Part shown: positions 4,758 through 61,890 of the stretch, piece by piece | Layout: every line of letters starts with the position of its first letter | Numbering within the stretch: position 1 is the first letter of the stretch | Position numbers and translations under genes: made by a program | Source of the DNA: Hypanus sabinus | Lineage: Eukaryota | Length of the DNA stretch: 64,000 nucleotides | Reading direction: 5' to 3' | Assembly (NCBI RefSeq): GCF_030144855.1 | Contig: NC_082731.1 | Location: 20,398,001-20,462,000, forward strand | Notes under the pieces: model-generated | Databases searched by the model: none | Seen by the model: the letters and a program-made list of their open reading frames with translations, nothing else | What the model was told of the DNA's origin: nothing

Positions 4758-5340
4758 CTTAGGTATGATAGGGTAGACGAACATGCACCTACAGGAATTA
4801 TGGGAAATACGGACGGAGGCCATATTTGCTGCCCAATTTGAGTAGATCTTCCTTAAGATTGGCCTTTCGTTCTAGATGATTATTTTGAGGAGTGAATGTT
4901 CGAGAGAGTTTTAGATCCAGCACATGTGGCAATTGATGGAACTGACTTCGGCCACTAGCCTGCAGAGTCGAATATGCATTTTAGATTATTTTAAAATGCA
5001 GCTCTGAACAATGCCTCCGATTGCAGACAATTCTTATTAAAACGCATTTTGATGTCTGTGGTTTGGGCGCGAATCTTGAAGTATGAGGTTTGTGTGTGCT
5101 TCCAACGAAGGCATTGTCGGTGTATTGTAAGTATGGAATTGTCCTTTGATGGTTAGTACATAATATATGAGATAACGTGGGGATCGAGATCTTTCAACCG
5201 AAAGGGCCTTAATACAGTATATTGCTTGCTTTTTGTTCTGTTTTTCAAAAAAAAAAAACGACCCTGTATAATCAGTTCTTCTTTATAGGTGCGTCCTTTG
5301 CTCCACCCTCTCATAAGGGACTTTACTACCTACTACATCC
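4758..5340 (+). mobile_element. 3' end of an ERV cassette: env-position remnant, PPT and LTR (LTR starts about 4897; end approximate)
   Basis: Paralogous to 9560-10180 and 46960-47590; gaggagtgaa|TGTT boundary. Confidence 0.6.
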
Positions 5341-5701
5341 CCTCCACCTTTCACGGGAATTGCTGTTTACGCAATTGTGCTTTATTCGTCCTGACCATTA
5401 ATCTTCAATCGGACACTTTTTCTTGTAAGCGGCTTGATAGCCACACCTGCCTCACTACCATTGAGAGCCGAATACGTTGCACTTATTTTCTGCCTCAGTG
5501 GCGTACCTCCGTTTGGCGGAGGGATAACATGCGGAGAGAGAGAAATGCATCTGAATTGCGTTTGGCGAGTGGGCAGAGGATAGAGCAAAATCCAGGGGAA
5601 AGTGTGGGGAACTAATATGATGCGAAAATGGAGGGAGAAAGAGGGCGATTGGGAATGATTGCGGGAAAATGGAGAATGAGAATAAATGAGGGAACACTGA
5701 A

Positions 5702-5703
<2 letters not shown>

Positions 5704-5766: not shown

Positions 5767-5769
<3 letters not shown>

Positions 5770-6334
5770 GGTGATCGATAGAGCAGTAAGTACAGCGAGA
5801 GTCAGGGGAATTGAGGGAAACTGGGAAGCGGACATTTAGTGGAGAAGAATATAAAAAAGAAAATGAGTTCCAGCCACCGTATGGTAATGTTTATGGCGAA
5901 GATGTTTACAGTTCTGGGAATCTGATTTCTGTGTTCTGCTCCTGCGCGTTTATAAGTCTGTATGACCTGCCTTCGGATTGTGGGGAAATTCTGCAGGATC
6001 TCCAGTCTCCGCTCACAGTCCAAAGGCATACTGATAGGTAGGTTAATAACTCATTGCAGATTGTGCTGTGATTAGGTTAGGGTCTTGGATCGCTGGAGGT
6101 GAAGATCTGTACACGATAGGGCAATCCCGCTTTCGGCCGCCAGTTCAATAAATAAAACAGAAGTTGAAACTGTGAGACAAACAAAGCATGAGAGAGAGGA
6201 AGACGGGGAGAGCCCGAGAAAGGGAAACGGAAGGACGGAGCACGAGGGAAGGAAGGATATATCGGGTGGGCAAGAGAATATAACTGCAGGATAAAAATAA
6301 AGATGGAAAGACAAAGACAAAGATGGGAAAGTGG

Positions 6335-9300
6335 CAGGAGCGCAGAAACAAATCATCCACGGTCACTTAATCAAATTAAGAATGCGAACATTGTTCGTAA
6401 ACGACATGCAGATTTGAGGAACCCTCTGTCAATGGAATATGTAACAATTTGCAAAAAATAAGCCTTATAAAATATTTTCCAAACAATAGCAATTGTATCG
6501 ATAACTGATCTGCATTTGTCTACAGCCGGATAGTGTATGAACGGGAAGTTTATATTACGGGTGTAGGAGAAACAACGGTGAAAGGAGAAAGAAGCGAAAT
6601 GAAGATACTCGAAATAGGCAAGGTACCACCTTCAGTGTATTTCTGGATCTGTCCTAATAATGATAGTACTATTCTCGGACTAGATCCTAAAAGGGCAGCA
6701 ATGGTCATTGTAGATCTACGAAAGGGTTAAATGACATGCAGAAGCCAAGGGGAGCGAAAACGTACAACGAAATTCGTACACAACGTCGCCAGCGGAATCG
6801 CACTGACAGATGTTCACAAGTCAGTAACGGAAATTAGTGACACTGGAATTAATCCCGCTTGTACCCTCCTCAGAGATAAGGAGGCACACGAATGTCAAAT
6901 AGGAATAGAGCAGGAAAAAGTTATGGGTGAAAATGAAATACCTCTGAACGGAAAGCAGGGAATACTTTGTGGATGGGTCTCGGAGGTACATAAACCAGAA
7001 CGCACTGTCTGGGTGCACTGTGGTGAAGGACACAGGTGAAGAATGAGCTTCAGCAGCACTGCCAGGGGATTGCTAAGCTCAGGAAGCTGACCTGCAGTTC
7101 CTGACAGAAGCAATGCGCCACAGTAAAGGCAAACAAGAAAATATATATTCAGATAGCCCCTGTACCCTCCGGCTGGTCTGGGGACGATGAGGATTTGTGA
7201 CCACATCAGGTGCAGGTATACAGCACCCAATAAAACAACTGCTGGATGCACTGTCTGTCAGATCAAGTGACAGAAATTAAAGTGGAATCTCAGCAGTAAG
7301 AGAAGAGTAATGAGAAGAAAATAACAACAAGAAGTTGCAAGTGTGCAGGAAGAAACGTCGAAGCCAGTTGAATAAAAACAGAGAGCTCGCAATGGACCCT
7401 TGGATAACATTGAAGAAGCAGGGGAAAAGCTTATGTCTCGTCATTATGAAGAAAATAAAATCTGCATATTTTGGAAATGCAAGAAATACACACAAACCGC
7501 TGGTGGAATTCACGTGGCCAGGCAGCATCTCTGTAGTGATGAACTGTAATTAAGCTGCCTGGTCTGCTGCGTTCCTCCAGCATTTTGCATGTATTGTCTT
7601 CTAATTATGGATCACTTCAGTTGGCGGGTAGAAGTTTTCCCAACCAGAGCAGCATTGCACGGTGTGTTGTCAGTTAATCTTACCAAGGTGAAGAACTCTT
7701 CCAGACGGACTTTTACCAGGAGCACATTTAACACGGAAAGTGATAAATAAAATGTGCCGACTGCTAGGGATTCTACAACGTTTGCACAGACCCTACCACC
7801 AAGGACGCGGCCTGGCAGATTAATGCGCCATCAGGATTCAGGACCTGCTGCGTGGTTGATTCGAGGCCGTTTCTGCTGCCTGATGAGATGTGTGAGCCCA
7901 CAAAAGATCTGAAGCAGCAAGAAGTGTGGACCCGATTTCTTTGGTAAATTGCTCGGTAAAAGCGACTCTGCAGGCTTTAAGCGCCATAAATCAGAGAGTT
8001 GTTTGTTATGTCTCTCCCCTCGCTGTGAAATGGGGCACATCGTTTGCCCTTTTTCGGGAGAAACACAGACTGTGATATGTGGAATACTGGGTGAACGATT
8101 TGTCTTTGATGTACTGCATATATCTGTCTTTCTTATGATTTGCTGCAGGCTTGAGTGTTCTTAGCGGGTGCCGATGTTTTTCACAGGTGTGTGAGTGATG
8201 GGGATTCATTCTTTGGGGCACTCCTCTGTTTTCCTGGATGGTTTCGAAGAAATATTATTTCAGGATGTATATTCTATATATTTCTCTGACAATAAATGTA
8301 CCAATTTAACCCCTCGAAGCTATTGATCCCTCAGAGTTCAGGAATGGCAGAAAACATAAACCGAGTAATACCTTTGCAAAAACTACAGCTGATCGTGAAA
8401 GACAAGGATTGATGTGTTACCATTCATCCTGATGAGATTGCGAGCAATACAAACAGCACGCTGGTTTTCAGACGCTATAAGCTATTGATAGGGTGATTAA
8501 TCAGATTACCTTATGGGATAACTACAGGTTGCGGCGAGCTAAGCCTGTACAGAGATATACTGACTCAGTGCGTGAAAGAGCTTTGTATGCGACTGATCGT
8601 ATTGAAGGATCGAGCGAAACAACAACAGCACATTGACGATCAGGGAGATCCACTGCGAAAGGAGATAGTCCACATAAATGGCAGTGACCGACTCATGGTG
8701 AGGGTGTTGCTTGAAAGTGTATGCTACCACATGGATCGGACCACAGAGAGTTCTTTTAAAAAGTGACACGTGTTTTTATCAACGCGTTACCAATCAGCCA
8801 GTGGAAAGAATGGATTTGGGTTATACTGCAAGAATCACCTTCTCGTTGTCACCATAGACAATGCGGGGGAAGGAGTACAGCCAGCAACTGTGTAATTATA
8901 GAGAATCCGACATATGAACACCAGCCAGCCACACCACAACCGACCACAATGGTTGGAAACTGATCTACAGGAAACGCAATGGTATAGGGCACCGAGCTAT
9001 GAATAATATGCTAAAGAGTGACGGTAAAAGTACTCTGTTCTGACCTGATTACCGAAGGTATCTGATTCGTTTAATAGCAGAAAATAGAAAATATATTGCA
9101 GAAAATGGCTCGGTAGGGATTTAAGTTGAAGCAGACATATCCATAAATTCGAAAGTATGGTAGAATGATCAGGATTGCAGAAGGAATCTGAAGGCAGATA
9201 CACTCAGCCTGATTGGGGAATAGAAGTGGGCTGACCCCTTTCAGTAGTTGCGGCCAGCGATCACTTAGGTAGTTGGGGCAGGAGAGCAACCAGGGAGAGG

Positions 9301-12372: not shown

Positions 12373-12804
12373 ATGAATTTCCGGTGTTCTCTGCTGATTA
12401 TATTGGCTATCATGCCCGGTGAGTCTTCGCGGTCACGGTCTGTATCTGTTCCTTATGCCCGGAGAAAGCTCGATTTGTTCATGTATTCTGTCATTTTATT
12501 GCAGGAGCAATTGGGAAAGATTCAGTGACGCAGTGGCCGACTGAAATAACGATTGTGGAAGCAAAAAATGTAACACTGAACTGTAATTACACTGGTGATG
12601 CTCGAAACATTATTTGGTACGTTCAAAATCGAATGGAATCTCCAAAATATTTGTTGACGTTATATAGCACCGGAATGATGGACCGGCATGCAGAATGTCC
12701 GGAGAGGTTTACCGGTGTTTGGCAGAGAGACAGAAAGGCGGCACATTTGAAAATCTCTGGTGCTTTTGTGTGGGACTCCGCCGTGTACCTTTGTGCGATG
12801 GACA
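12373..12804 (+). CDS. TRAV: TCR alpha/delta-type V segment V1 (leader exon 12373-12418, intron 12419-12504, V exon 12505-12804), open frame
   Basis: Leader MNFRCSLLIILAIMP-G; GT..AG phase-1 intron; V exon DSVTQW...TLNC...IIWYVQ...DSAVYLCAMD with Cys23, Trp41 and Cys104; followed by a 23-RSS. Confidence 0.9.
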
Positions 12805-12843
12805 CACAGGATTGTGAGGTGATGAGAGCACAGGACAAAATCC
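12805..12843 (+). other. 23-bp-spacer RSS of V1 (non-canonical heptamer CACAGGA)
   Basis: CACAGGA (12805-12811) + 23 nt + ACAAAATCC (12835-12843). Confidence 0.85.
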
Positions 12844-12899: not shown

Positions 12900-13315
12900 A
12901 GGAGCGCAGGTAAAAAAAATCTACCCACTGTCACATGATATATTTAAGTATGTGCAAATTATTACCAAAAGATATGTGGATTTGAGTAACTCTCCGTCGA
13001 TGCAATGTGTACCAATTTGCACAATTTGAAACGTTATAAATCATTTCCCAAACATATGCGCTATGTTAGTTGACACAGGGGCAATGGTATCGCTAACTGA
13101 TCTGCATTTGCCGATAACCAGCAGGATATTTATATGATGGGTAGAGGAGAAACAACTGTTAACAAAGTACGAAGCGATTTGAAGGTACTCCAAATAGGCG
13201 AGGCGCAAGTTTCAGTATATTTGTGGATCTGTCCAAATAATGAGGGCACTATTCTCGGACGAGAAACTGAAATGGAAACAAGTGACATTGTAGATCCAGG
13301 AAAGGGTAAAAGGTT
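12900..13315 (+). mobile_element. ERV aspartic protease remnant of cassette 1
   Basis: gttagttgacacaggggca encodes LVDTGA; ORF 13134 contains CPNNEGTILGRE (ILGRD-like). Confidence 0.75.
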
Positions 13316-13948
13316 CCGTGTCGAACACTTACTCTCACCTAGTCCTACCTATCCGCACTCAGCCCATAACCCTCCATTCCTTTCCAGTCCATATACCTAT
13401 CCAGTTTCTTTTTAGATGATAAAATCAAACCTGCCTCTACCACTTCTACTGGAAGCTTGTTCCACAGAGATAGCGCTCTCTGAGTTCAGAGGTTCCCCCT
13501 CGTGTTACCCCTAACCTTTTGCTTCTTAACTCTCAACCCATGTCCTCTCGTTTGAATTTCCCCTGTTCTCAAAGGAAAAAGCCTATCTATGAAAACTCTA
13601 TCTATTCCCCTCATAATTTTAAATACCTTTATCAAGTCCACCCATCAACCTTCTACACTCCAAAGAATAAAGACCTAACTTGTACAACCTTTCTCTGTAA
13701 CGTTGGTGCTGAAACTCAGGTAACATTCTAGTAAATCTCTGTAATCTTTCTATTTTATTGACATCTGTCCTATAATTTGGTGACCAGAACGGTACACAAT
13801 ACTCCAAATTTGGCCTCACCAATGCCTTGTACAATTTTAGCATTACATCCCAACTCCTATACTCCATGCTCTGATTTATAAAGGCCAGCGTACCAAAAGC
13901 TTTCTTCACCACCTTATCCACATGAGATTCCACCTTCAGGGAACTATG
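13316..13948 (-). mobile_element. CR1 LINE 3' part (left half, interrupted by Gypsy)
   Basis: ORF 13619..13933 (KLYKALVRPNLEYCVPFWSP...LGLYSLECRRL). Confidence 0.88.
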
Positions 13949-16900
13949 CGTGACGCCCCTGAAAAACGGGGAGAAATAATCACGTCAGCGAAGTGAGGTG
14001 GTTTCCTCATTGAGAATTTACTCAGGTGAAGAAAGTACCGCGATGTCCCCTGGGTATGTAGTTGGTGACAGAATCAATCGGCCTCAGGCTAGCTGATCAA
14101 GGCTTCTCTGCAGAACAATGACAATACTATTAGGGCTTAACTTTACATAATAAAGAATGAAAGAAACAATGAAATGAATTAAATAACTTTTAGTATTTTA
14201 GCCCATTTAACATGTGTTTTCACTGTTTTTAAACAATTTTTGAACTTAACAGATCTTTAGTGTCTTATCCTTTAACTTGCCACATTGCCCGACAAAATTC
14301 AATGTTGTCCAAACATTACACAATTTTCCCTTTTCGCTTTACTTTTACAGTCTCTCATGAACTTGGCACTGAAGACCTTCTGTGAGTTGGTACTCAAGGG
14401 CCAAGGGTCACAGTTTTATGACTGTCAACAGTGCATAATCACAGGTCCCAGTCCATGTCTGGTGACGGGCCGCTGAGACAGTCTATACGCAGTCTTTCAA
14501 CTGTTTTTAGTCTCTCAAGACAATGATCCGCATAAGCAGTCTACGCATTGCCCATGACGTTAGTCAAACATCAAGTCTGTCGGCTCACTCTGGCTGGCGT
14601 CCATACATGGTGGGCGGGGGGGTATTGGAAGTAGTATGACTGTACAGGTGGTAGCCATTGGACCATTCCTGATGCATGGAAGGGAGGCAACATCTGAGGT
14701 GCCGGCTAGACACTGTAGCAGGAAGGGATGCCAAGCTGATCGTAGATCATACATCTCGGCGGGTGTCTCTGCCTTTGTGGCAGCTGATAGGGCGGTTCCT
14801 CATGTTCAGTCGCAGCATTTGGTGAAGAAGAGGGGTGTGAGGAACGATCATCAGGCAGATTTCCAGCAGGGAAGTCTGTTTCCGCACCAGGCAGGTTTTC
14901 AGCAGGTGCATTAAACTCCTCCAGCCGATCTCCTTCAGGAGGCTACGCGGGTGATGCAACAGGAGCTTGCGTTTCAATTCTCCCTTCTGCTGGTGGGTGC
15001 CTGTTTTCAGGCTCCATCTCTGGTTCACCCAATGTCTCATTCCCTTCTGCTGGCATCCTGGGGGGCCGGAGCGGCTCATAATGAAGCTCAGACTCATCCT
15101 CACTGTCCTCATCTGATTCCTGAGTTTGATGTGCAGGCTGGTGTCTCTTTTTCTGTCTCCTCTGGTCATTTGTAGCGATCTCTGGTTGTGTCTCAAAAGG
15201 TAAGTGATGACGGGGCATTAGCACGTTTCTGTATAGGACTCTGGAGTGTCCCTTACCCCTTTCTGGACTCAGTTCATAAATAGGCAGGCCTGACCCCATT
15301 TGTCTCAATACTGTGTGGACTGCCCTCCCAATAGTTTCGGAGTTTACCTGGTCCTCCTCTGGGTGTCAAGTTTTTAATCAGGACACGCCCACCGGGTTGT
15401 AGAACTGAACTCCTCACTTTTGTGTCATAGTACCTTTTACTCCTTTCGGCAGTCCTTTGAGCATTTTGGTTTACAATGGCTTATGTTTCCTCCATACCTT
15501 GTTTCCATTTTTCCTCATAATTTCGCTGATCACTGGAACCTGGCTCTGTGTGCAAAGAGCTTATCAGGTGGCAGCCTGGGTGATCTCCCGTACAGGAGGT
15601 AAAATGGTGAGTAGCCTGTCACTTCGCAGCGTGTGCACTTATAGACATACACCAGTTTGTTCAGGGACTCCTTCCAGTTTGATTTCCGTGTCTCCGTCAG
15701 CGTCCTTAGCATTTGCAACAATGTCCTATTCATGCGTTCCTCTTGACCGTTCCCCATCGGGTGATAGGGCATTGTTCTGGACCCAGCCACACCGCTGAAT
15801 TACTTTAACAGACTGAAGAACTGATTCTCGAACTCTCCTCATTGGTCGTGGTGGATGCGAGAGGGGAAGCCAAACTTCCGGGCGTAGTCACTGAAGATGA
15901 GATTTGCAGTGTTTCCGGACTTTAATGTGATTGCGTACGCCTGAACAAAACGTGTAAAGTGATCAACAACAAGGATGTACTCATATCCACCTTTGCATTG
16001 GTCTAGATGGAGGAAGTCAATACACACCAATTCAAATGGCTGTGTCGTCACAATATTTGTCAAGGAGGCTCTTGTATCGTGGCAGGGCTTTTTCTGTTTT
16101 AGACAAGTGCAGGCTTTGGTCACATAATGCTCTATTTCTGATTGCATTTATGGCCAGAAGAAGCGGTCACGTACTAAAGATACTGTGCAATCCGCGCCTT
16201 GGTGTCCTATGTGATTGTGCAGTTCTTCCAACACCTTCCCTTTGTAGCTTTCTGGCAAGATTAATTGCTTGCGGGCAGTGGTGGTTCTCTGTAGAATGCC
16301 ATCATCGTCTATTGTCAATTTGTCCCATTCTCTGAACAGGCATTTTGTCCTTGGACTGAATGCTCTCAGCTCTCTGACTGTTTGCTTGGAACCTGACAGC
16401 TTACACTCTAACACAGGACAGATGATGGGGTCTGATTTTTGTGTTACTCTTAACTGTTCTTTTGGTATTGGGCTGATGGACGCAGTGGCTGGCTCATTTT
16501 CAGCTGAGGCTGACATGGATACAGCTGTGAGTGGCCTAGTTGCAGTGGACTCTTTCTATACCTCAACAGCTTGTATGGCGGCAGCGATGGTGTTAGGCGG
16601 CAGTTCCTCCGAACATTCTCTCATCAGTGACTCTACGTCCAGCGGCATTCTCGACAAAGCATAGGCATTGTTGTTCTCTTTTCCCGGTCTGTACTTGATG
16701 GTAAAGCGGAAATCAGCCAACTCTGCAACCCACATGGAAGCAGTCGCGTTTAGTTTTGCAGTCGACAGGATGTAGGTGAGTGGGTTGTTATCACAATATG
16801 CAAGGTTGGGGCATTATACAGATGATCGCGGAACTTGTCAGTGATCGCCCACTTAAAGCCAGGAATTTTAGCTTGCCTGCATAGAAGTGATAGTTCCTTT

Positions 16901-20492: not shown

Positions 20493-20496
20493 CATG

Positions 20497-43614: not shown

Positions 43615-43653
43615 CACAGTGTTGTAAGGTGATGACAGCGACGGACAAAATCC
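43615..43653 (+). other. 23-RSS of V4
   Basis: CACAGTG + 23 nt + ACAAAATCC. Confidence 0.92.
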
Positions 43654-48687: not shown

Positions 48688-49430
48688 AACAGGCAATAGA
48701 CAATAAGTGCAGGAGTAGGCCATTCGGCCCTTCCAGCCAGCACCGCCATTCACTGTGATCATGGCTGATCATACACAATCAATACCCCGTTCCTGCCCTC
48801 TCCCCATATCTCTTGACCCCGCTATCTATAAGAGCTCTATCTAACTCTCTCTGGAATGCTTCCAGAGACTTGGCCTCCAGTGCCTTCTGGGGCAGAGCAT
48901 CCAAATATCCACCACTCTTTGAGTGAAAAAGTTTTTCCGCATCTCAGTTCTAAATGGCCTACCTCTTATTCTTAAAATGTGGCCTCTCGTTCTGGACTCA
49001 CCCATCAGCGGGAATATGCTTCCTGCCTCCAGCGTGTTCAATCCCTTAATAATCTTATATGTTTCAATCAGATCCCCTTTCATCCTTCTAAATTCCAGTG
49101 TATGCAAGCCCAGTCGCTCTAATTTTTCAACATATGACAGTCCCGCCATTCCGGGAATTAACCTTGTGGACCTACGCTGCTCTCCCTCAATAGCAAGGAT
49201 GTCCTTCCTCAAATTCGGAGCCGAAAACTGCACTCAATGCTCCATGTGGTGTGGCCCAGGACACTGTACAGCTGCAGAAGGATCTCTTTACTCCTCCTCT
49301 CAATTCCTCTTGTTAAAAAAGCCAGCATGCCCTTAGCTTTCTTTACTGCCTGCTGAACCTGCATGCTTGTTTTCATTGACTGATGTACAACAACACCTAG
49401 ATCTCGTTGTGCTTCCCCTTTTCCTAACTT
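48688..49430 (-). mobile_element. CR1 LINE 3' fragment
   Basis: ORF 48841..49233 RLIPGMAGLSYVEKLERLGLHTLEFRRMKGDLIETYKII. Confidence 0.88.
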
Positions 49431-49681
49431 GGCATGGCCAAGTGGTAAAGGCGATCGAATGGGATCAGAAGGTCGTGAGTTCAAGCCTCAGCCGAGGCAG
49501 CGTGTTGTCTACCAGCAAACTGCTGGGGGTAAACCTCGCGATAGATTGGCGTCCAATCCGGGGGGTGGAGGGGGAAGGGGAAGGGGACGAGGGAGTCTCG
49601 AACTCTTAGTCGCTTCACTCTACAGAAACCGGCATAAGCACCGGCCTGATGAGTCTTTAAGGCTCGGGACAGACTTTAACT
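49431..49681 (+). mobile_element. tRNA-derived SINE (V-SINE-like)
   Basis: A-box-like ggcatggccaagtggtaa and B-box-like gagttcaagcc, followed by a non-tRNA body (gggggtaaacctcgcgatagattggcgtccaatccggggg...tagtcgcttcactctacagaaaccgg) resembling fish V-domain SINEs from memory. Confidence 0.65.
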
Positions 49682-50600
49682 CATTATCTGATGAGACCTG
49701 AAGGCCTTTTGCAAAATGGTTATTTCACCATCATTATGTACTCGTCGGTACATAGGGATCATCTGTCTAAAGACAAGCTCTCTCGTTTTTTCGCAGATGA
49801 ATAAGACTCAATATTCACAGGACCAATTCCTAACTGAATTTACATGCAGTGAGGAACATGGCGAAAGACCAAGCATTGAGAAGAGATAGGGGGAATAAAT
49901 ACTGTAGAGTCAGTGAGCGATATTGCGAACAGGTCAGAAAGAATTAGAGATAGATAGATACTTAGATAGTNNNNNNNNNNNNNNNNNNNNNNNNNNNNNN
50001 NNNNNNNNNNNNNNNNNNNNNNNNNNNNNNNNNNNNNNNNNNNNNNNNNNNNNNNNNNNNNNNNNNNNNNNNNNNNNNNNNNNNNNNNNNNNNNNNNNNN
50101 NNNNNNNNNNNNNNNNNNGTCTGAGAGAAAGAGTTGCAGTGGAACAGAACGAACGTATGTGGGGGAAGAATATGGTAAGAATATGGAGCTTAGAAAAACA
50201 GAGACTTATCGAGAAGCCTAGGTAGTTCTGAGGTGAGGACATGTTCAGCACAGCTTGGTGACCGAAGGGCCGGTATTGTGCTGTATATTTTCTATGTTTC
50301 TGTGTTTCTAGCGAGTGAGATTGCAAATGAGTGAAAGCAGGAGAAACATTGCGAGGAAGTAATACGAGATAGAAAGAAGTATAAAGGCAAGCAGAAACAT
50401 CAAAAAACAACTGAAACAAAATGTGATTGGTGTCCGGACCGGAATACTTACACACTCACAGCCAATCAATCCACTGGCAGGGCTGCGCCTCCACATGTAT
50501 GCAAGCTGAAATATGCCTCAGGTCTGATTTTACCCTTCATTGTCGATCAAGGATATTAACTTATTGGACTGCAAATAAGCTGTCTTTCGATCCGGACACC

Positions 50601-51033
50601 ATGAATTTCCTGTGTTCTGTTCTGATTATATTGGCTATGATGCCCGGTGAGTCTTCGCGGTAACGGCTTGTATCTGTTCCTTATATCCGGAGAAAGCTCG
50701 ATCTGTTCATGCATTCTGTTATTTTATTGCAGGAGCAATTGGGAAAGATTCCGTGACGCAATGGCCGACTGATTTAACGATTGTGGAAGAACAAAATGTA
50801 ACACTGAACTGTAATTACACTGGCGTACCTAACTATATTGCTTGGTATGTTCAGCATCGAGTGGAATCTCCAAAGTATTTGCTGAAGTTGTACAGCAGTG
50901 GAAAGATGGAGCGGCATGCAGAATGTCCGGCGAGGTTTACCGGTGGATTGCAGAGTGGCAGCAAGGCGGCACATTTGAAGATCTCTGGGGCTTTTGTGTC
51001 GGACTCCGCCGTGTATCGTTGTGCCATGAGTCC
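50601..51033 (+). CDS. TRAV: TCR alpha/delta-type V segment V5 (leader 50601-50646, intron 50647-50732, V exon 50733-51033), open frame
   Basis: Leader MNFLCSVLIILAMMP-G; V exon ...LNCNYTGVPNYIAWYVQ...DSAVYRCAMSP. Confidence 0.92.
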
Positions 51034-51072
51034 CACAGTGTTGTTGGGTGATGACAGCTCCGGACAAAATCC
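51034..51072 (+). other. 23-RSS of V5
   Basis: CACAGTG + 23 nt + ACAAAATCC. Confidence 0.92.
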
Positions 51073-51169: not shown

Positions 51170-51810
51170 TAACAATGAGAAAGTTTTTAGCAAAATATAC
51201 GCAGATTTGAGGAACTCTCCTTCAATGGAATGTGCAGTAATTTGCACTGATTGAAACGGTATGAAACATTTTCCAAACAGATGTGACGTATTAGTTGAGA
51301 TAGGGGCAAAATATCCATAACTATCTGCATTTGCCAAGAGCCGGACAGCATATTTATATTACGGGTGCAGGAGAAAGAAGCGAATTGCAGATATTCGAAA
51401 TAGACGTGGCGCCAATTTCAGTGATTTCTGGATAAGTCCGAATAATGTGTGTACTATTCTGGCAAAAGACACTGAAAGGCATGCAAGGGCCATTGCAGAT
51501 CCAGGAATAATATGGACAAGCTAAGGGCAGCAAGCACGTGCAATGAAGTTCACACACAACGCTGCCAGCGTAATCGCACTGACAGCTGTTCAGATGTCCG
51601 TAATGGTAGTGAGGGACTCCGAAATTAATCCTGCGAGTACACCCCTTACAGAGAGGGAGGCACCTGGATGTCAAATAGGTATAGAGCAGGAAAAAGAGTT
51701 TTTTTCCAATAAAAAACTCACCCTGAATATACTGTAATCGGCTGTCGATTTTAGGTGCGTCGTTTGCTCCACCCTCTCCTAAGGGACTTCACTATCCACT
51801 CCATCCCGTC
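51170..51810 (+). mobile_element. Strongly deleted ERV remnant of cassette 5 (protease/tether joined directly to the LTR 3' part)
   Basis: INPASTPLTEREAPGCQIGIEQE (ORF 51543), then a jump at about 51700 to ccAATAAAaaactcaccctg, the LTR R-like region. Confidence 0.7.
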
Positions 51811-53258
51811 CGCTTTCGGCGGGGATTGCTCTTTCCGCGATTCCTTTTCATTAGTCCTCAACACTAATCTTCAACTTCCGCAATGTACTGTTTATCGCGA
51901 AGCTGCTTACAGTTCAGGGTATCGAATTTCGGTGTTCGATTCCTGCGCAACTATAAAGGGCATCTATAAAGGGCCTTCGGAAAGTGCAGAAATTCTGCGG
52001 GATCTCCAGTCTCCGCTGGCAGTCCAACGATGTACTGATAAGCATGTTAATGACTCATTGTAATTCTAGCTGTGATTAGGTTAGGGTCTTGGATCTCTAG
52101 ATGTAAAAATCGGTGCCCGATGGGATTATTCCGTGATCTACTGCTCAGAAAGTAAATAAAACAAAAGTTAAGAGTGTGGGACTAAGAAAGCATGAGAGAA
52201 AGAGGACGACCGAGTAAACGAGAGAAAGGGAAAGGAAAAGACGGAACAACAGGGAATAATATATCTGGGGAGGGGGTGCTTAAGAAAACAAATGAGTATT
52301 ACGAAAATAAAGCGGGAAATTAAAGTATGAGGCAGGAACTAAATAGAGGATAGTAACGCTTGTACAACGGAAGGAACGATCGATGTAGGGACATGGGAGG
52401 GAATGAAAAATGGAAGGTTAGAGATGAATATGGTGTGAGGCGTTCAGTGAGGNNNNNNNNNNNNNNNNNNNNNNNNNNNNNNNNNNNNNNNNNNNNNNNN
52501 NNNNNNNNNNNNNNNNNNNNNNNNNNNNNNNNNNNNNNNNNNNNNNNNNNNNNNNNNNNNNNNNNNNNNNNNNNNNNNNNNNTATTCACCAGAACAATTA
52601 TTGAAGTGAATTTACATGCAGAAGGAATATAGAGAAACACCAAGCAATGAGAAGAAATATGCGGAATAAATGACTGAGAGTCAGCGAGCGATATTGAGAA
52701 CATGTCATAATGAATGAGCGATATACAGTTCGAGAGATAGATAGTTACATAGTTAGAGAAGGAGAGAGTGGGTATTTGTAAGAGAGAGAGATATTCTGTA
52801 GAACAGATAGAAGGAATGGGGGGAAGCATATGGTAAGAATATAGAGCTTAGAAAAATAGAGTACTATAGATAAGCCTAGGTAGTTCTAAGGTAAGGACAT
52901 GTTCAGCACAGCTTTGTGGGCCGAAGGGCCTATATATTACTGTAGGTTTTCTATTTTCCAATGTTTCTACTTAGTGAGATTGCAAATAAGAGAAAGGAGG
53001 TGAAACTTTGAGAGGAAGTAATACGAGATAGAAAGAGGCACAAAGACAAGCAGAAACAGTGGAAATAAGTGAAACAAAATGTGATTGGTGTCTGGACCGG
53101 ATATATTCGGCGCTCACAGCCAATCAATGCACCGGTAGGACTGTGCCCTCACATGTACGCAAGCTGAAATATGCCGCTGTACTGATTTTACTCTTCATTA
53201 TCTGTCAAGGATATTAACTTATTGGACTGCAAGTAAGCTGTCTTTCGATCCGGACACC

Positions 53259-53692
53259 ATGACTTCCCTGTTCTCTCTGCTGATTATATTGGCTATGATG
53301 CCCGGTGAGTCTTCGCGGTAACTGTCTGTATCTGTTCCTTATGTCCGGAGAAAGCCATATCCGTTCATGCATTCTGTCATATTTATTGCAGGAGCAATTG
53401 GGAAAGATTCCTTGACGCAGTGGCCGACTGATTTAATGATTGTGGAAGAACAAAATGTAACACTGAACTGTAATTACACTGGCACTGCTCAGCGTATTTT
53501 TTGGTACGTTCAGCATCGAGTGGAATCTCCAAAATACTTGCTAAATATTTATAGCAGCGGAAAGATAGACCGGCATGCAGAATGTCCGGCGAGGTTTTCT
53601 GGTGGTTTGCAGATAGGCAGCAAGACGGCACATTTGAAGATCTCTGGTGCTTTCGTGTCGGACTCCGCTGCGTATCTTTGTGCTATGAGTCC
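53259..53692 (+). CDS. TRAV: TCR alpha/delta-type V segment V6 (leader 53259-53304, intron 53305-53391, V exon 53392-53692), open frame
   Basis: Leader MTSLFSLLIILAMMP-G; V exon DSLTQW...LNCNYTGTAQRIFWYVQ...DSAAYLCAMSP. Confidence 0.92.
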
Positions 53693-53731
53693 CACAGTGT
53701 TGTAAGGCGATGGCAGCGCCGGACAAAATCC
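53693..53731 (+). other. 23-RSS of V6
   Basis: CACAGTG + 23 nt + ACAAAATCC. Confidence 0.92.
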
Positions 53732-53819: not shown

Positions 53820-56218
53820 TGACTTAAGAATGCGAATATTATTTGCCGATGATATGCAGATTTGAGGATATCTCCGTCAATGGAATCTGTACCAATTTGC
53901 TCAAACCGAAACGTTACAAAATATTTCCCAAACACATTCGATGTGTTAGTTGACACCGGGGCGATGGTATCGATAACTGATATGGATGTTGCAACAAATG
54001 GACAGGATATTAAATTACGGGTGCCGGCGAAATTCCCCGGAGAGGAGCTCCAAATCCACCAGACAAACAAGAACAAAAATTAAAGCTGCAAAACCTGCAC
54101 AAAGCCACATAATTATAACACATAGTTACAACAGTCCAAACAATAGCATAATTGATAATAAACAGACTATGGGCACAGTAAAAATAGTCCAAGATGTTGA
54201 AAGACTGTAAGTTCAAAAGAAATCACCACAGTTTCCAAAAGTCCCCTGGGTCCCAATAGACTTACCATCCCACGCCGGCGGCAGAAGGGAGTACCCCTTG
54301 CCATGGACTTTCAAGGCGTCGCCCAACAGCCTTCAGACGCAACCCACACCGAAAGCGACCTGAGTCAGTCGAAAGGACTCCGAGTCAGTCGAACCCCCGA
54401 GCCGACGGCCATTCGCTCCGGCACAGCTTCTACGAGCACCATCCTCTGCCGAGCGTATTAAGATGGCCCCGCTAACGGCCATCGGCAACGCGACGCCGAG
54501 GACTGGGGGCCTGTTCTTCCCATGAGAGTGCCGGCAGCAAAAAAGAAGGTCTTCCTGGAACTTCCCGATGTTTCTCCGTGCTTCCACGTCCGTTTTCAAT
54601 CGATTATGATTGCGCTCGGCACCCCGCTTCACAAATAGCAGATAATCCGTTCTGGTGTGGCCGCTGCAAGCTGCGTCGCGCCGCCATCTTGGATCAAGAT
54701 AATAGTGCAAATAGAAAGAAACGAATTGCAGATACTCGAAATAGGCGAGGAGCTACTTTCAGTGCTTTTCCGGATTTGTCCAAATAATGAGGGTGCTGTT
54801 CTCGGAATAGACACTGAAAGGGAAGCAGGGGTCATTGTAGATCCAGGAAACAATGAAATAATATGCACAAGCCAAGGGCAGCGAACACGTCCAACCCAAT
54901 TGCAAATGTCCAGGAAGTAACGTCGGAAGCTAGTTGAATAAAAACAGACCGCTCCGAGGAGACCCTTGGATAACATTCAAAAAGCAGAGGGAAAATGTTA
55001 TGTGTGGTTATTATGAACAAAATGAAATCTGCAGATGTGGAAATCACAGAAATACACATAAACTGCTGGAGGAACCGACCTTGCCGGGCAGCATCTCCGT
55101 AGTGATGAACTGTAATTAAGTTGTCTGGTCTGCTGCTTTCTTCCAGCATTTTGGGTGTATTGTCTAGTAATTATGGATCACTTCAGTCGGCGGGTAGAAA
55201 CTTCCCCAATCAGCGACTGCCAAGGTGAAGAACTCTTCCAGATGGACTATGACCATGAAGAATATTTCACAAGAAGAGTGATAAATGAAAGGTGCCGTCT
55301 GCGATGGATTCGACAACAGTTCCACATACCCTACCAGCAAGGACGCGGGGCCTGGAGGCGATCTGATTCGAGGCCGGTGCTGCCGCCTAATGTACTGTGT
55401 GAGTACACGGAATGATCTGAAGCAGCAGGACATTGATGATCAGAGAGATCCATTGGGATAGGGGATAGTCCTCCCAAATCCGATGACCAAGTCACGGTGA
55501 TGGTGTTGTTGAAAGTGTATGCTCCCAGATGGATCGGACCACAGAGGGTTCTTTTAAAAAGTGAAGCGGGTTTGTGGAGACTTCACGAGGCAGCCAGTGG
55601 AAACAATGGATTCAGGTTATACTGTCAGACTCTGCTTCTTGTTGCCACCACAGGCAAAGCGGGAGCAGGAGTGCAGCTAGTAACCGTGTGATTACAGAGA
55701 ATCCCCGAGATGGACAAGTTGATGGAAACTGAACCACAGTAAACGCGAAGGTAGTGATCCATGTCATGAGAGAACCACGTGAATAAAATGCTAAAGAGTG
55801 AAGGTAAAATTACTCTGGTCTGACCGCTGATTACTGAAGGTATATGATTAGTTGAATAGGAGAAAATAGAAAATATATTGCAGAAAACAGATCGGCAGGG
55901 ATTTAAGTTAAAGAAGACATATCCATAACTTCGAAAGCATGGTAGAATGAAGAAAGTTGCAGACGGAATCTGAAGAGGGTTACGCTCAGTCGGAATGGGG
56001 AACAGAAGTGTACTGGGCCCTTTCAGCAGTTTTGGCCAGCGATCGCCTGGTTACTTTGGGCAGGAGTGAATCCAAGGAGAGGTCGTTTCAGTAATATAAA
56101 TGAAGACCATCCGAACCCCTTATTGTGCATCGATGAGAGGGCCTGTGAGCCTGATGTATTTACTTTGCTGCTGTCCCTGGAAAGAGAGGGTGTTAGCTAC
56201 CAGAGAATGGAAGGATGG
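53820..56218 (+). mobile_element. Multiply deleted ERV remnant of cassette 6 (interrupted at about 54030-54690)
   Basis: ORF 53862 VLVDTGAMVSITD; AVLGID (ORF 54657); YCLVIMDHFSRRVE (ORF 55155); APRWIGPQRV (ORF 55497). Confidence 0.78.
54030..54690 (-). mobile_element. Unclassified insertion, probably the GC-rich 5' end of a retroelement
   Basis: Absent from paralogous cassettes and splits the protease remnant; the minus strand begins ccaagatggcggcgcgacgcagc. Boundaries approximate. Confidence 0.45.
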
Positions 56219-56220
56219 AG

Positions 56221-56521
56221 GAGCAATTGGGAAATATTCCGTGACACAGTGGCCGACTGATTTAACGATTGCGGAAGAACAAAATGTTACATTGAACTGT
56301 AATTACACTGGCGCTACTGAATATATTTTATGGTACGTTCAGCATCGAGTGGAATCTCCAAAATACTTGCAAAAGGTATATTACTCCGGAAAGTTGGAGT
56401 GGCATACAGAATGTCCGGAAAGGTTTACCGGTGATTTGCAGAGAGACAGCATGACGGCACATTTGAGGATCTCTGGTGCTTTTGTGTCGGACTCCGCCGT
56501 TTATCTTTGTGCCATGAGTCC
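56221..56521 (+). pseudogene. TRAV: Leaderless TCR V exon V7 (open frame; promoter, leader and intron deleted)
   Basis: GAIGKYSVTQW...LNC...ILWYVQ...YLCAMSP is preceded directly by ERV-cassette sequence (ccagagaatggaaggatggag) instead of the intron polypyrimidine tract. Confidence 0.88.
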
Positions 56522-56560
56522 CACAGTGTCGTAAGATGATGACAGCTCCGGACAGAATAC
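56522..56560 (+). other. 23-RSS of V7
   Basis: CACAGTG + 23 nt + ACAGAATAC. Confidence 0.88.
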
Positions 56561-56659: not shown

Positions 56660-59600
56660 TATGATTTCGAAAATTATTCGTAAAAGATATGCAGATTTGA
56701 GGAAATATCCGTCAACGGAATGTGTACATATTTGTACAAATTGAAACGTTATAAAGCATTTCTCAAACACATGTGATATGTTAGTTGACACAGGGGCAAT
56801 GTTATCGATAACTGATCTGCATTTGCCAACAGCTGGACAGGATATTTATATTACGGGCGTAGTAGAAATAACGGTTGAAAGTAGAAAGAAACGAATTGCA
56901 GATAGTCGAAATGGGCGAAGAGCAACTTTCAGTGTATTTCTGGATCCATCCAAATAATGTGGTCACCGTTCTCGGAGTAGATATTGAAAGGGAAGCAAGG
57001 GCCATTGCAGATCCAGGAAAGGGTGAAATAATATGCACAAGCCAAGGTCAGCGAGCACATACAACCAAATTCGTACACAACGTACACAATGTAATCGCAC
57101 TGACAGCTGTTCACTAGGTAGTAACGGCAGTTAGAGATACCGGAATTAATCCCGCGAGTACTCTCCGCACAGACAGGGAGGCACACGAATATCGAAGAGG
57201 AATAGAGCAGGAAAAAGATATGGGCGCAATGGAAATACCTTTAGAGGAAAGCGGAGTTGGGTCTCAGAGGTACATAAACTAGAACACACTGTCTGGATGC
57301 ACTATGGTAAAGGACACAGGTGAAGAATGAGCTTCAGCGACACAGCCAGGCGACTGCTAAGCTCAGGTAGCGGACCTGATGGCCCTGACAGAAAGATGCG
57401 CTATAGTAAAGGCAGGCGAGCAAATATATATTCAGACAGCCTGCATATCTTTGGGGCGGTAATCGTTTGGCCTGGGGACGCTGAGTATTTGTGACCACAG
57501 CCGGTGCAGGTATTGAGCACTGGCACCGAATGCAACAACTGCTGGAAGCACTGTCTGCCAGCTCAAGTGACAGTAATTAAAGTGGAATCTCAGTAGTAAG
57601 AGAAGAGTAAGGAGCAGAAAGTAGTAACAAGAAATCGGAAGTGTGCAGGATGAAATGTCGGAAGCTAGTTGAACAACAACGGACAGCTCCGAATAGATCC
57701 TTGTATGGCATTCAAAAAGAAGTGAGAAAAGCTAATGTCCCGTCATTATGCACAAAAGAAAATCTGCAGATGCTGGAAATCCAAGGAATACAGACGATAT
57801 GCTGGAGAAATTCACCTGGGCAGGAAGGATCTCATAGTGATGAACTGTAATTAAGCTGCCTGCCCTGATGCGTCCCTCCAGCATTTTGTGAGTATTGCCT
57901 TATAATTATGGATCAATTCAGCCGGCGGGTGGAAGCTTTCCGAACCAGAGACTGTCCCGCCAGCAGCGCTGCATGGAGTATTGTCAGATAATCTTGCTAA
58001 GGTAAAGAACTCTTCCAGATGGACTGTGACCAGGAAGCACATTTCACAGGGAAATTGATAAATGAAATGAGAGGGATTCGACGGCAATCCCACACACCCT
58101 ATCACCAGGCAACCCGCCTGGAAGATTATTGCGCCTTCAGGATCCCACATATCTGTGTTTGTTAATGGTTTGCTGCAGGCTTGAGTGCTCCTGCCGGGAG
58201 CAGATGCATTTTACTGGTGTGGGAGGGGGGTTAGTTGCTTGGTTCCTGCTTATGCATGGCTGGGGCGAGTTGGAGGAGTGGGTTTGCGCTTCTAATATCT
58301 GTCATTTATTCTTTGGGGCACTCCTTTGTTTTCCTGGACGTTTTCGAAGAAATATTATTTCAGGATGTACAGTGGCATTCAAACGTTTGAGCAGCCCGGT
58401 CGAAATTTCTGATACTCTGAATACCTAAGCCCCTAAAAGATGACCTGATTTCCGAAAGGCATACCGTTAAAGGTGACGTTTCTTTAACGTTTTAAGCAAG
58501 ATTACTTTTATTATTTGCATATTTTAGAGTTTCGAGAGTCTTTCAATTGTTGTTTGGGCGATTTTTGCCCTTTCCTCGTGCAAAAGTTTTCAAGTTCTGT
58601 GAGATTCTTGTGTCGTCTTGCATGCACTATCCTATTCAGGTGTATCCACAGATTTTCGATGATGTTTAGGTCGGGGGACCGTGAGGGCCGTGGCAAAGGC
58701 TTCAGCTCGTGCCCCTTGAGTTGAGGTCTATTTAGGATCATTATCCTTTTGTAGAAGCCATCCTCTTTTCATCTTTAGCTTTATTACAGACGATGTGATG
58801 CTTGCTTTCAGAATTTGCTGGTATTTCATTGAATTCATTCTTCCTCCTACCAGTGAAATGTTCCACGTGCCACTGGCTGCAACACCAGCACAGAGCATGA
58901 TTGATCCACCCCCGTGCTTAACAGTTGGAGAGGTGTTATTTTCATGAAATTCTGCATCCCTTTTTCTCCAAACACACCTTTGCTCATTGCGGCCATGAAG
59001 TTCTATTTTAAATTCATCAGTATTCAGGAAAGGTCTACCAAATGCGTCAGGCTTGTTTAAGTATTCCTTTGCAAACTTCCTACGCTGAATTTTGTGGTGA
59101 GGACGCAGGAAAGGTTTTCTTTTGATGACTCTTCCATGAAGGTCATATTTGTGCAGGTGTCGCTGCACAGTAGAACAGTGCACCAACACTCCAGACGCTG
59201 CTCAATCTTTTTGAAGGTCCTTTGCAATCAAACAGGGTTTTTGATTTGCCTTTCTAGCAATCCAACGAGCATTTCTCTCCGAACGTTTTCTTGGTCTTCT
59301 AGACCTCAACTTGACATCCACTATTCTTGTTAACTGCCATTTCTTATTGACATTACGAACTGAGGAAACGGCTACCTGAAAATGCTTTGATATCTTCTTG
59401 TAGCCTTCTCCTGCTTTGCTTATTTATTTGCTCATACACTTTAACTTTCAGAGTACGAGGCAACTGTTTAGGGAAGCCTATGGCTGCTGATTCTTCGGAA
59501 GAGGTTTGAGGAGTCAGGATAATTGCACAGCTTTGGAAGTTGCATCACCTGGCCTTTCCTAACGATGACTGTGAACAAGTCATTCCCCTAACATGTAATT

Positions 59601-61720
59601 GAAATCTGAGATCTTGGTAAAAGTTATCTGAGATCTCAAATCTCTTGGGGTGCCCTATCTTTTGCTTGGTGCACCTTTCCTTTTTTCCACTCTAAAATTG
59701 TACAAAACCAAAATAATACACTAATATTTCTTAAAATGTTGAAATAATGTTTCATCTTTAACTTTATGACTTTCGGAGATTAGGTCTCTTAACTATTTCA
59801 GTAACAGAAAGTTTGACCAGCGGTGCCCAAACATTTGCATGCCTCTGTATATTCTATACATTTCTCTGATATTAAATGTACCTATTTAACCTATCGAACC
59901 CATTGAACCCTCAGAGTTCAGGAATGATAGAAAACATAAGCCAAAGATTACCTTTGCCAAAGCTACAGCTGATGGGGAAGGAGATGGGTTGTTGTATTAC
60001 CGTTCATCCTCACGAGAGTGCGAACAATCGAAACGGCACGCTGGTTTTCAGCCGCTATGAGCTATCGACAGGAAGAAAAATCAGGTTCACTTATGGGATA
60101 ATTACGGATTGTGGTGAGCCTGGAGAGTACAGGGATAGACTGACACAATATGTGAAATACCTTTCTATGCGACTTAATGTATTGAAGGATCGAGACAAAT
60201 AACAGCAGCACCTCAGCGATCAGAGATCCATTGGGAAAGGCGATAGTCCTCCTAAAGCCGAGTGATTAAGTTCTGGTGAGGGTGTTGCTTGAAAGTGTAT
60301 ACTCCCAGATGGATCGGTAAACAGATGGCACTTTCAAAAAGTGACACGTGTTTATGTGGAGACTTCACGAATCAGCCAGTGGAAAGAATGGATTCATGTT
60401 ATACTGTTAGACTTTCTTGTTGCCACCACAGGCAAAGCCGGGGATGGAGTGCAGCTAGTAACAGTGCAATTATAGAGAATCCAGGAGATGGTCACCAGCC
60501 AGCCAAACTAGAACTGACCAAAATTGCTGGAAAGTGATCCACAGCAAACTTGAAGGTAGAGGGCACCGAGATTGTGACAGAAACCCGTGAATAACTTTCT
60601 AAAGTGTGACAGTAAAAGTATTCTGTCCTGACCGCTGATTACCGAAGGTATATGTTTGCCTGCAAAGCAGAAAATATAAAATATTTTGCAGGGAATGGAT
60701 TTGCAGGGATTTAGTTGAACTCAGACATATCCATAACTGCGATAGCATGGTAGAATGAGGAATATTGCCGACCGAATCTGAAGGCAGTTCCGCTCAGCCT
60801 GAATGGGGAGTAGAAGTGGGCTGGCCCCTTTCGTCAGTTTCGGCCAGCGATCGACAGGAGTGCAATCAGTGAGAGGTCGTTTCAGTAACTGAAATGCAGA
60901 CCAGCCCAACACAACATTGTACATCGCTAAGAGGGCCTGTGAGCCTGATGAATATTTCCTTCTTGCTGTCGCTGGATAAAGAGAGTATTAGCTGCCAGAG
61001 AATGGAGGGATGTAAGCTTCAATCAGTCAGCAAAGAAAGAGCTAACAGGCATACGCATGAAGCTGCATTTCTGAAGACTGCTGTTCACATTTCAGGACAA
61101 ACTCTCTGCTGAGCATTTTGAAGGTAGCAATTAGGTATGATAGGGTAGATATACATGCGCCTACAGGAATTATGGGAAAATCCGACGGAGGGTATTTTTG
61201 CTGCCTAGTATGAGTAGATCTTCCGTAAGATTGGCCTTTCCTGTTAGATAATTATTTTTGTCCGGGGTGCCAAAAGGAGGTAATGTTCGAGAGAATTTTA
61301 GATCAGCTCATGTGGCGATAAATGTAACTGAGTTCGGCCACTAAACTTCAGAGTCGGCTATGTATTTTAGATTATTTTAAAATGTAGCTCTGAACAATGG
61401 TTTCCTTAACGCTGCAAATCACGGACCAGACAATATTTATTAATATGCACTTCGATGTCTGTGGTATGGGTGCGAACCGTGAGGTGTGAGGTTTGTGTGT
61501 GCTTTCAAAGAAAGCATTGTAGGTGCATTGTAAATATGGATTTGTCCTTTGACGGTTAGTCCATAATATATGAGGTAGCATGGGCAGCGAGACCTTTCAA
61601 ATGAAAAGGCCTTAATTGCCCGCTGTATTTTTTTTTCAAAAAACTTCACCCTGAGTATTATATGTTCTTGTTTTCAGATGCGTCGTTTACTCAACACTCT
61701 CCTAACGGACTCTACTACCA
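56660..61720 (+). mobile_element. ERV remnant of cassette 7 (protease, RNase H, integrase, env-position DNA, PPT, LTR from 61284), interrupted by Tc1
   Basis: LVDTGA at about 56781; ORF 59876 PLNPQSSGMIE...FSRYELSTGR...DRLTQYVK (integrase core end); PRWIG (ORF 60289); caaaaggaggtaa|TGTT. Confidence 0.8.
58370..59847 (-). mobile_element. Tc1/mariner DNA transposon, decayed
   Basis: Imperfect TIRs CAGTGGCATTCAAACGTTTGAGCA / reverse complement CAGAGGCATGCAAATGTTTGGGCA; TA TSD at 58368-58369 and 59848-59849; ORF 58728..59189 with RKPFL...TDE...TVKHGGGSIM. The empty site caggatgTAtattctat is visible at 8261-8277. Confidence 0.93.
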
Positions 61721-61890
61721 CTCCGCCTTCCGCTGCGATTGCTCTTTCCTCGATTCCTTTTTATTTATTTTCTGTCTCAGTGGCGTGTTATCCGTTTGCC
61801 GGCCGGAAGGCATGCGATGATAAATGCGACTGAATTGCGGTTTGCGAGTGGGCAGAGTAGAGAGTAAAATCCAGGGATACGTGTGGGCAA

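Follow-up and report, generated by a model that had tools for sequence, protein, structure and literature searches.

Tandem array of V gene segments and retroviral remnants

Within the window, i.e., the whole stretch of 64,000 nucleotides analyzed here (contig NC_082731.1, positions 20,398,001 to 20,462,000 of assembly GCF_030144855.1), variable (V) gene segments of an antigen-receptor locus and decayed pol remnants of an endogenous retrovirus (ERV) follow each other on the plus strand in one tandem array. The window has a G+C content of 43% and a ratio of observed to expected CpG dinucleotides of 0.65, and it contains three runs of N. A tandem arrangement of V genes and ERV remnants had been noticed in an initial annotation of this DNA. 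Self-BLAST of the window recovered it as head-to-tail copies with a period of ~5.3 kb and pairwise identities of 75–90%. The segment 38294–43614, reaching from heptamer to heptamer, was chosen as reference unit, and every block of the window was mapped onto it. The array delimited in this way is:

4759–61891, plus strand: tandem array of V + ERV-remnant units of ~5.3 kb each (self-BLAST and mapping to the reference unit), its right end lying at about 61891

In total, eight pol-like remnants and seven V genes were counted, one remnant lacking a V gene, which agrees with the earlier estimate of about eight units. The units lie head-to-tail and have common internal junctions, as is characteristic of a tandem duplicon.

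Structure and type of the V gene segments

Exactly seven V exons were found in the window, all of them on the plus strand:

12373–12843, plus strand: V1, with leader exon (12373–12418), intron, V exon (12505–12804) and recombination signal sequence (RSS; 12805–12843) carrying the heptamer CACAGGA
30928–31399, plus strand: V2, with leader, ~85-nt intron, open V exon (31060–31360) and RSS with 23-bp spacer (23-RSS)
37861–38332, plus strand: V3, with leader, intron, open V exon (37993–38293) and 23-RSS
43182–43653, plus strand: V4, with leader (43182–43227), intron, open V exon (43314–43614) and 23-RSS
50601–51072, plus strand: V5, with leader, intron, open V exon (50733–51033) and 23-RSS
53259–53731, plus strand: V6, with leader, intron, open V exon (53392–53692) and 23-RSS
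56216–56560, plus strand: V7, open V exon and 23-RSS, with neither leader nor intron

Each of the seven V exons has an open frame of at least 110 codons and retains the Cys, Trp, Cys framework within the motifs LNC, WY.Q and YLC or YRC; the Pfam V-set domain was matched with an E value of 1e-12. In V1 to V6, the leader is composed of an ATG, a 46-nt leader exon, a GT donor, an intron of ~85 nt and an AG acceptor. V7, which consists of V exon and RSS only, is probably a pseudogene, as it lacks a leader exon, an intron and the upstream region. The RSS of six of the seven V segments features a CACAGTG heptamer, a 23-bp spacer and an A-rich nonamer of ACAAAATCC type, the V1 heptamer being the variant CACAGGA. 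Having a V-set domain, a split leader (V1–V6) and a 3′ RSS, V1 to V7 are rearranging antigen-receptor V segments. Previously determined leader-to-leader spacings of 18555, 6933, 5321, 7419 and 2658 bp were reproduced to the base; the V6–V7 interval, which was absent from that list, has its heptamers 2829 bp apart.

The closest solved structure to the V domain is a T-cell receptor (TCR) alpha V domain, with an E value of 5.6e-17 for a single V query and of 2.3e-20 for a profile. Furthermore, no joining (J) or constant (C) segments were found in the window. An array composed of V segments only, in the same orientation and free of J or C segments, would fit a translocon locus and hence a TCR locus. 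The V genes are putatively of the TCR alpha/delta type.

Retroviral identity of the pol remnants

Behind every V, and once without a V, remnants of a retroviral protease, RNase H and integrase follow each other in this order on the plus strand. The motif peptides quoted in the initial annotation are present in the plus-strand translation. When 30 single open pol-like pieces were searched against Pfam, only rve (E 0.016) and RNase_H (E 0.23) were returned. Since single pieces are too short and too decayed for Pfam, profiles were assembled by combining open pieces that are homologous between units, every piece being used unaltered and in one frame.

Profile A3, representing integrase-core pieces from seven units, yielded 11 matches with E ≤ 1e-3 among 1.84e9 proteins, with a best E value of 8.7e-9. 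It matched only integrases: the Pfam rve domain was located at the matched place in all ten proteins scanned, most of these also carry Integrase_H2C2, and some carry MLVIN_C, RNase_H or RVP. With the A3-matched proteins as comparators, tblastn located the integrase core on the plus strand of seven units with scores of up to 64 bits. In PDB, the integrase-core profile recovered integrase cores only, but at E values of about 1. With the rve core recognized in this way, the integrase remnant represents a firm sequence-based assignment. A collinear match inside the MLVIN_C domain of proteins P0001, P0012 and P0015 was weak (E 0.04–0.2, below significance), and no match to the Integrase_H2C2 zinc-binding domain was detected in the unit remnants.

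For the RNase H part, profile A7 matched nine PDB sequences, all of them RNase H of xenotropic murine leukemia virus-related virus (XMRV) or Moloney murine leukemia virus (MoMLV), with a best E value of only 0.0039; the tblastn match to RNase H reached E 0.004. The protease part is represented by tblastn matches of the RVP part of P0015 located 256–261 bp behind four heptamers (E 8e-6 to 4e-3), by a match of profile A1 to P0003 (E 3e-4 in a small comparison set) and by an Asp-Thr-Gly-Ala signature in the window's own translation at this place. The protease remnant begins 256–261 bp after the heptamer, the initial annotation having placed it within about 250 bp of the RSS. PDB searches with profiles of the protease, pre-RNase H and distal integrase pieces returned nothing useful. 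Accordingly graded, the RNase H and protease remnants are probable assignments, and an affinity of the pol remnants to class I (gamma/epsilon-like) ERVs is plausible. Thus, of the earlier proposal that the motifs represent a class I retroviral pol, the retroviral integrase stands firmly and the class affinity plausibly, while the RNase H and protease parts are backed by weak scores.

Reverse transcriptase (RT) was not detected on the plus strand of any unit, neither as an RVT_1 domain nor as a match to the RT of comparator proteins. In one unit (remnant E in the list below), the protease and pre-RNase H pieces share an open frame and lie about 80 codons apart; RT is therefore lacking and not just decayed. 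Likewise, open pieces preceding the protease and following the integrase remnants gave no Pfam match for gag or env, although short degraded remnants could escape such a search. The object is an ERV fragment, not a provirus.

As a side observation, two of the closest database relatives, P0015 and P0003, likewise have a protease domain and, behind it, RNase H and/or integrase but no intervening RT; P0015 consists of one continuous open reading frame (ORF) of 743 amino acids. Loss of RT may be frequent among derivatives of this ERV group, although the deletions do not look the same as that of the array.

State of the eight pol copies

Decay of the pol copies was recorded as the number of stops or frameshifts needed to cross each copy, all counts being lower bounds:

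6490–8892, plus strand: pol remnant A, behind the V-less junction; protease, RNase H and integrase; at least 19 interruptions; shared integrase-core insertion
13063–29102, plus strand: pol remnant B, behind V1; at least 11 interruptions; three nested transposable element (TE) insertions; distal integrase deleted
31617–35978, plus strand: pol remnant C, behind V2; at least 16 interruptions; one nested fragment resembling a long interspersed nuclear element (LINE); shared integrase-core insertion
38550–41044, plus strand: pol remnant D, behind V3, reference copy; at least 19 interruptions; shared integrase-core insertion
43800–46245, plus strand: pol remnant E, behind V4; at least 21 interruptions; shared integrase-core insertion
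51290–51713, plus strand: pol remnant F, behind V5; protease and pre-RNase H left; ~3 kb deletion; at least four interruptions
53949–55688, plus strand: pol remnant G, behind V6; several internal deletions; at least five interruptions; best single integrase-core piece (the rve match at E 0.016)
56775–60466, plus strand: pol remnant H, behind V7; at least 19 interruptions; nested Tc1-like insertion and shared integrase-core insertion

Between 0.4 and 2.5 kb of pol-like DNA are kept per copy, and the longest open stretch comprises 153 codons. Two large defects are common to all long copies, namely the lack of RT and an insertion of ~0.5–0.6 kb splitting the integrase core.

Shared junctions, divergence and selection

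In each of the seven V units, homology extends without a break from the V exon across the RSS and a spacer of ~215 bp into the protease remnant; from the integrase remnant, it likewise runs uninterrupted across the spacer into the upstream region of the next V. Different junctions of the ERV copies behind different V genes would have pointed to related ERVs that inserted independently behind each V at a preferred site. The recurrence itself agrees with such insertions, and nothing more does: the V-to-protease junction has the same sequence in all units and is homologous in 7/7, homology extends through the whole unit, all long copies carry the same large defects, and the divergence of the ERV part matches the silent divergence of the V exons. 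Since junctions and large defects are common to the units, independent insertions are in practice excluded.

The mean number of synonymous substitutions per synonymous site (dS) is 0.22 for the V exons, and the p-distance of the flanks amounts to 0.22–0.30. V-exon dS being close to flank divergence, the V and ERV parts are of the same age. Based on the identical junctions, the common large defects and the similar V-silent and flank divergence, the earlier view that V and ERV were amplified together as one tandem cassette holds.

V exons together with leader and intron are about half as diverged as the flanks, leader and intron being as conserved as the V exon (8–14% diverged vs. 22–30% in the flanks, e.g., at 43182–43614). 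The mean ratio of nonsynonymous substitutions per site (dN) to dS is 0.65 for the V exons, of which 7/7 are open, vs. at least 11–21 interruptions per long pol copy. These values suggest that selection acts on the V part only and that the pol remnants evolve neutrally.

Co-option of the ERV-derived DNA, e.g., as a regulatory or accessibility element of each V that is kept in each unit for this reason, would be in line with the presence of a remnant behind every V and with the retention, in most units, of the segment preceding each V promoter. However, no stretch of the ERV part is notably conserved: identities along its length are 73–88%, as opposed to 89–93% in the leader, the intron and the 5′ portion of the V exon. 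Moreover, the two units reaching from V5 to V6 and from V6 to V7 lost most of their ERV part, and their V genes still look intact. Co-option is therefore considered very unlikely.

Assembly gaps within the array

Three assembly gaps are located within the array:

30181–30353, no strand: assembly gap 1, in the (GA)n phase preceding the V2 promoter; sequence on either side collinear with the reference unit
49971–50118, no strand: assembly gap 2, same unit phase as gap 1, upstream of V5
52453–52582, no strand: assembly gap 3, same unit phase as gap 1, upstream of V6

All three fall at one unit phase, namely the (GA)n tract immediately 5′ of the V promoter region, and their flanks are collinear with the reference unit at its positions 4173/4329, 4396/4421 and 4181/4249. 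None of the V exons and pol remnants is interrupted by the three N runs. The assembly probably broke at this phase because of the (GA)n microsatellite that precedes the V promoter. Whole units of the tandem array could be hidden inside the gaps, and for this reason the V1–V2, V4–V5 and V5–V6 spacings depend on the estimated gap lengths.

The position of the three gaps inside the array, all at one unit phase, could also be read as a trace of mis-assembly by which a single V + ERV unit was multiplied. However, the copies differ by 10–25%, whereas artefactual copies would be nearly identical, and single copies carry private insertions with target-site duplications (TSDs) of their own as well as private deletions. 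An assembly artefact is thus highly improbable.

V-less unit and array edges

One unit lacks the V gene, and the DNA at both edges of the array differs from the unit sequence:

6309–6329, plus strand: junction of the V-less unit, where a purine-rich tract joins directly, within a short microhomology, to a point ~45 bp beyond the RSS position
2016–4754, plus strand: LINE-like element abutting the left array edge by its 3′ end (RVT_1, E 2e-16)
63238–64000, plus strand: right flank with a 198-bp copy of a unit segment (63238–63435, preceding the array's starting phase), then the endonuclease part of a LINE

At the V-less unit, a V segment of ~1.3 kb is missing, and its removal by a microhomology deletion is the simpler reading. 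To the right of 61891, 1.35 kb of unrelated DNA is followed by the partial unit and then by the LINE endonuclease part. The latter is 90% identical to 2016–2339, homology starting at 2016 and 63676. Most likely, the array continues past both ends of the window.

Further observations were made at the flanks. Both flank LINE copies border on one and the same unit phase, a hint of duplication of a LINE-bearing unit on a larger scale. A higher-order repeat of 61.7 kb, as could be drawn from the 90% match between 2016–2339 and 63676–63995, was rejected since nothing left of 2016 matches the right flank. Upstream of the element at 2016–4754, an open frame of 383 codons (244–1395, plus strand; no Pfam match) could represent its ORF1 or something else.

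Possible provirus ends

The initial annotation had also described a polypurine tract (PPT) and a long terminal repeat (LTR) behind the integrase remnant and had considered that the V gene sits inside a provirus. The stretch in question is exemplified by:

46246–48686, plus strand: segment between integrase remnant and V upstream region, with AATAAA, purine runs and (GA)n end; no protein match

If the V gene lay within a provirus (in the order LTR, V, protease, RNase H, integrase, LTR), the ERV would be the engine of the array and recombination between LTRs would have amplified it. Each unit indeed contains one post-integrase stretch that could be an LTR (AATAAA, a 12-nt purine run, then TG), and one unit joins the post-integrase region to the protease remnant without a V. 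However, the 12-nt purine run followed by TG is not distinctive in this region, where purine runs are frequent, so that the PPT is not significant. No direct repeat that could represent a second LTR was found inside any unit by self-BLAST, neither a TSD nor a primer-binding site (PBS) was recognized, and Rfam and tRNA scans were empty. The PPT and LTR therefore remain putative. Moreover, the V is built like a genomic gene, having an intron, an upstream region and an RSS, and the V-less junction shows microhomology as a deletion would give.

The array was likewise not found to be bounded by an LTR and a TSD, since its edges within the window are the 3′ end of a LINE on the left and 1.35 kb of unrelated DNA followed by a partial unit on the right. 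An LTR at each array end, taken from the same stretch of ~0.6–0.9 kb, was rejected on account of the same two edges. With no LTR pair, gag or env signal or TSD, and with edges that are not LTR ends, the location of the V inside a provirus found no support and is very unlikely. A related proposal takes the unit as the leftover of a provirus-like element enclosing a functional V, with a real LTR per unit and exchange between LTRs starting the array; it is judged quite improbable. If true, the ERV would be the actual driver of V-family expansion in an early-branching jawed vertebrate.

Nested elements and unit lengths

Intervals between V genes differ in length through insertions and deletions, among them the following nested elements:

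13950–20493, minus strand: LTR retroelement in the V1–V2 interval; 335-bp LTRs 86.6% identical, apparent 4-bp TSD, Integrase_H2C2 and rve
22270–28533, plus strand: L1 LINE in the V1–V2 interval; Transposase_22, endonuclease, RVT_1 and zf-RVT, A-rich tail, ~17-bp TSD
31918–33787, minus strand: LINE-like fragment in the V2–V3 interval; RVT_1
58368–59856, minus strand: Tc1/mariner-like insertion in the last unit; HTH_Tnp_Tc3_2, E 4e-11

The V1–V2 interval holds a LINE-like fragment, the minus-strand LTR retroelement and the L1. Its LINE-like fragment (13355–13949 and 20512–21698, minus strand) is the same insertion as that at 31918–33787 and is split by the LTR element; because this fragment is present in both, the V1–V2 and V2–V3 interval units are sisters. 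The V4–V5 interval retains about 1 kb that was lost from the reference unit and has a private insertion of 1.1 kb, and the V5–V6 and V6–V7 intervals are short through deletions. Nested elements with TSDs and deletions hence account for the varying spacings, as had been proposed for the ERV part.

Additional features of these elements were recorded. The integrase of the LTR retroelement at 13950–20493 is much better kept (tblastn E 1e-29) than the array remnants, and the DNA of this element is unrelated to the ERV fragment of the units. The L1 at 22270–28533 encodes an ORF1 of 301 amino acids, an endonuclease of 445, an RT of 645 and a zf-RVT part of 170 amino acids, ORF2 being distributed over at least three ORFs; it looks young relative to the array, and the best named relative of its ORF2 is a Hypanus sabinus entry (66%), a similarity that points to a cartilaginous fish, probably a batoid, as host. 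One LINE-like family (RVT_1, Exo_endo_phos) occurs four times in the window, namely at 2016–4754 (plus), 13355–13949/20512–21698 (minus), 31918–33787 (minus) and 63431–64000 (plus). Three segments have neither another match in the window nor a Pfam match: 48687–49795 (the private 1.1 kb before V5), 54034–54698 (~0.67 kb, V6 unit) and 61892–63237 (1.35 kb).

Proposed origin of the array

Based on these results, the locus is interpreted as a translocon-type V cluster, closest to TCR alpha/delta and probably of a cartilaginous fish, in which a block of ~5.3 kb containing a dead ERV fragment was amplified by segmental tandem duplication; a probability of roughly 0.8 is assigned to this reading. 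The tandem array, the anatomy of the V genes, their neighbours' homology to pol, the common junctions and large defects and the nested elements were demonstrated directly, while the order of events, the TCR alpha/delta assignment and the host group were inferred. The ancestral block would have comprised one V gene (with its own upstream region, split leader, V exon and 23-RSS) beside a gamma-like ERV fragment. The latter would already have been defective, consisting of protease, RNase H and integrase with a split integrase core and devoid of RT, gag and env. Expansion would have proceeded via segmental tandem duplication and unequal crossing-over of the ~5.3 kb block, each round copying the V and the ERV fragment together, so that the ERV fragment would be a passenger. 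Subsequently, the V exons would have been held open by selection and probably in part homogenized by gene conversion, while the pol remnants would have decayed neutrally. Private insertions (L1, LTR element, LINE-like and Tc1-like elements) and deletions would finally have altered the lengths of the units.

That the ERV remnant itself supplied the homology for unequal crossing-over, as was suggested previously, found no support: nothing singles out the ERV part, since the whole 5.3 kb unit represents homology once two units exist.

Several points weigh against the interpretation as a co-duplicated TCR-type cassette. V-exon neighbours (V4–V5, V2–V5) differ from flank neighbours (V1–V2, V3–V4), and exchange between units has blurred the block-wise co-duplication. 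These differing neighbours suggest gene conversion among V segments; together with a block of 89% identity common to the V3 and V4 units, both ends of which fall inside units, they are signs of unequal exchange or gene conversion. Furthermore, the V-less unit could instead represent an older state, and the true array ends are located outside the window, leaving the first duplication junction out of view. Concerning the V genes, immunoglobulin light-chain V domains score just below TCR alpha, so that the chain type is unsettled, and no annotated V homologues were found with either one V or all seven as query. Finally, the protease and RNase H assignments have weak scores, and Pfam is nearly blank on single pieces.

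Comparison with known systems and implications

In translocon loci such as TRA/TRD, IGH and IGK, V subfamilies expand in tandem. Like these loci, the array features V segments in the same orientation a few kilobases apart, block-duplicated subgroups, pseudogenes and TE-filled spacers. Unlike typical translocon loci, its ancestral spacer is dominated by one recognizable ERV fragment, which makes the unit unusually traceable.

With gammaretroviral pol, as represented by the XMRV/MoMLV RNase H structures 3p1g and 2hb5, the remnants share the order protease, RNase H, integrase on one strand. The best integrase relatives, P0001 and P0012 (fish ERV-like, P0012 bearing the source label ‘NYNRIN’), possess an MLV-type C-terminal domain. 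In contrast to gammaretroviral pol, RT, gag, env, an LTR pair, a PBS and the integrase zinc-binding domain are undetectable in the array remnants. Their identity to pol relatives is 30–50% over short stretches, every copy being broken many times.

Within the human RCCX module, HERV-K is situated in an intron of C4. This module of the class III region of the major histocompatibility complex (MHC), with HERV-K in long C4 genes (PMC3595039), resembles the array in that tandem modules are copied by unequal crossover with the ERV as passenger of an immune gene (PMC3595039). It differs in that its ERV is dimorphic and lies within an intron, the number of modules (1–4) being polymorphic, whereas here the ERV is intergenic, is present in at least eight copies and is old (10–25% diverged).

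A further immune gene family that grew by an ERV-containing block is represented by the MIC-HERV16-HLA class I duplicon of the primate MHC (Kulski and Dawkins; reviewed in PMC6562477). As in the array described here, the ERV is repeated as often as the gene, in the MHC at least twelve times (PMC6562477). However, these blocks span tens of kilobases and contain two gene types together with HERV16, whereas the unit described here measures 5.3 kb and contains one V and an RT-less gamma-like pol fragment. Moreover, the ERV part of the MHC blocks gave rise to the transcribed genes P5/HCP5 (PMC6562477), of which no such sign is present in the array. In view of these well-known ERV-bearing immune-gene duplicons (PMC6562477, PMC3595039), the earlier remark that no description of such a V/ERV cassette was known is too strong. 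A limited literature search found no report on an ERV-bearing V cassette in a TCR locus, which is not proof of novelty.

Mechanistically, the array is a case of ordinary segmental duplication in which a dead ERV travels as passenger, and it represents a new example of a known process. Since ERV passengers are already documented for the primate MHC duplicons, views of V expansion and of ERV biology remain unchanged. The array provides a clean, datable case of V-family growth in a probable cartilaginous fish, in which the dead ERV fragment and the private TE insertions mark sister units and sites of exchange. Furthermore, it offers a contrast between V exons held open by selection and adjacent retroviral frames that decay.

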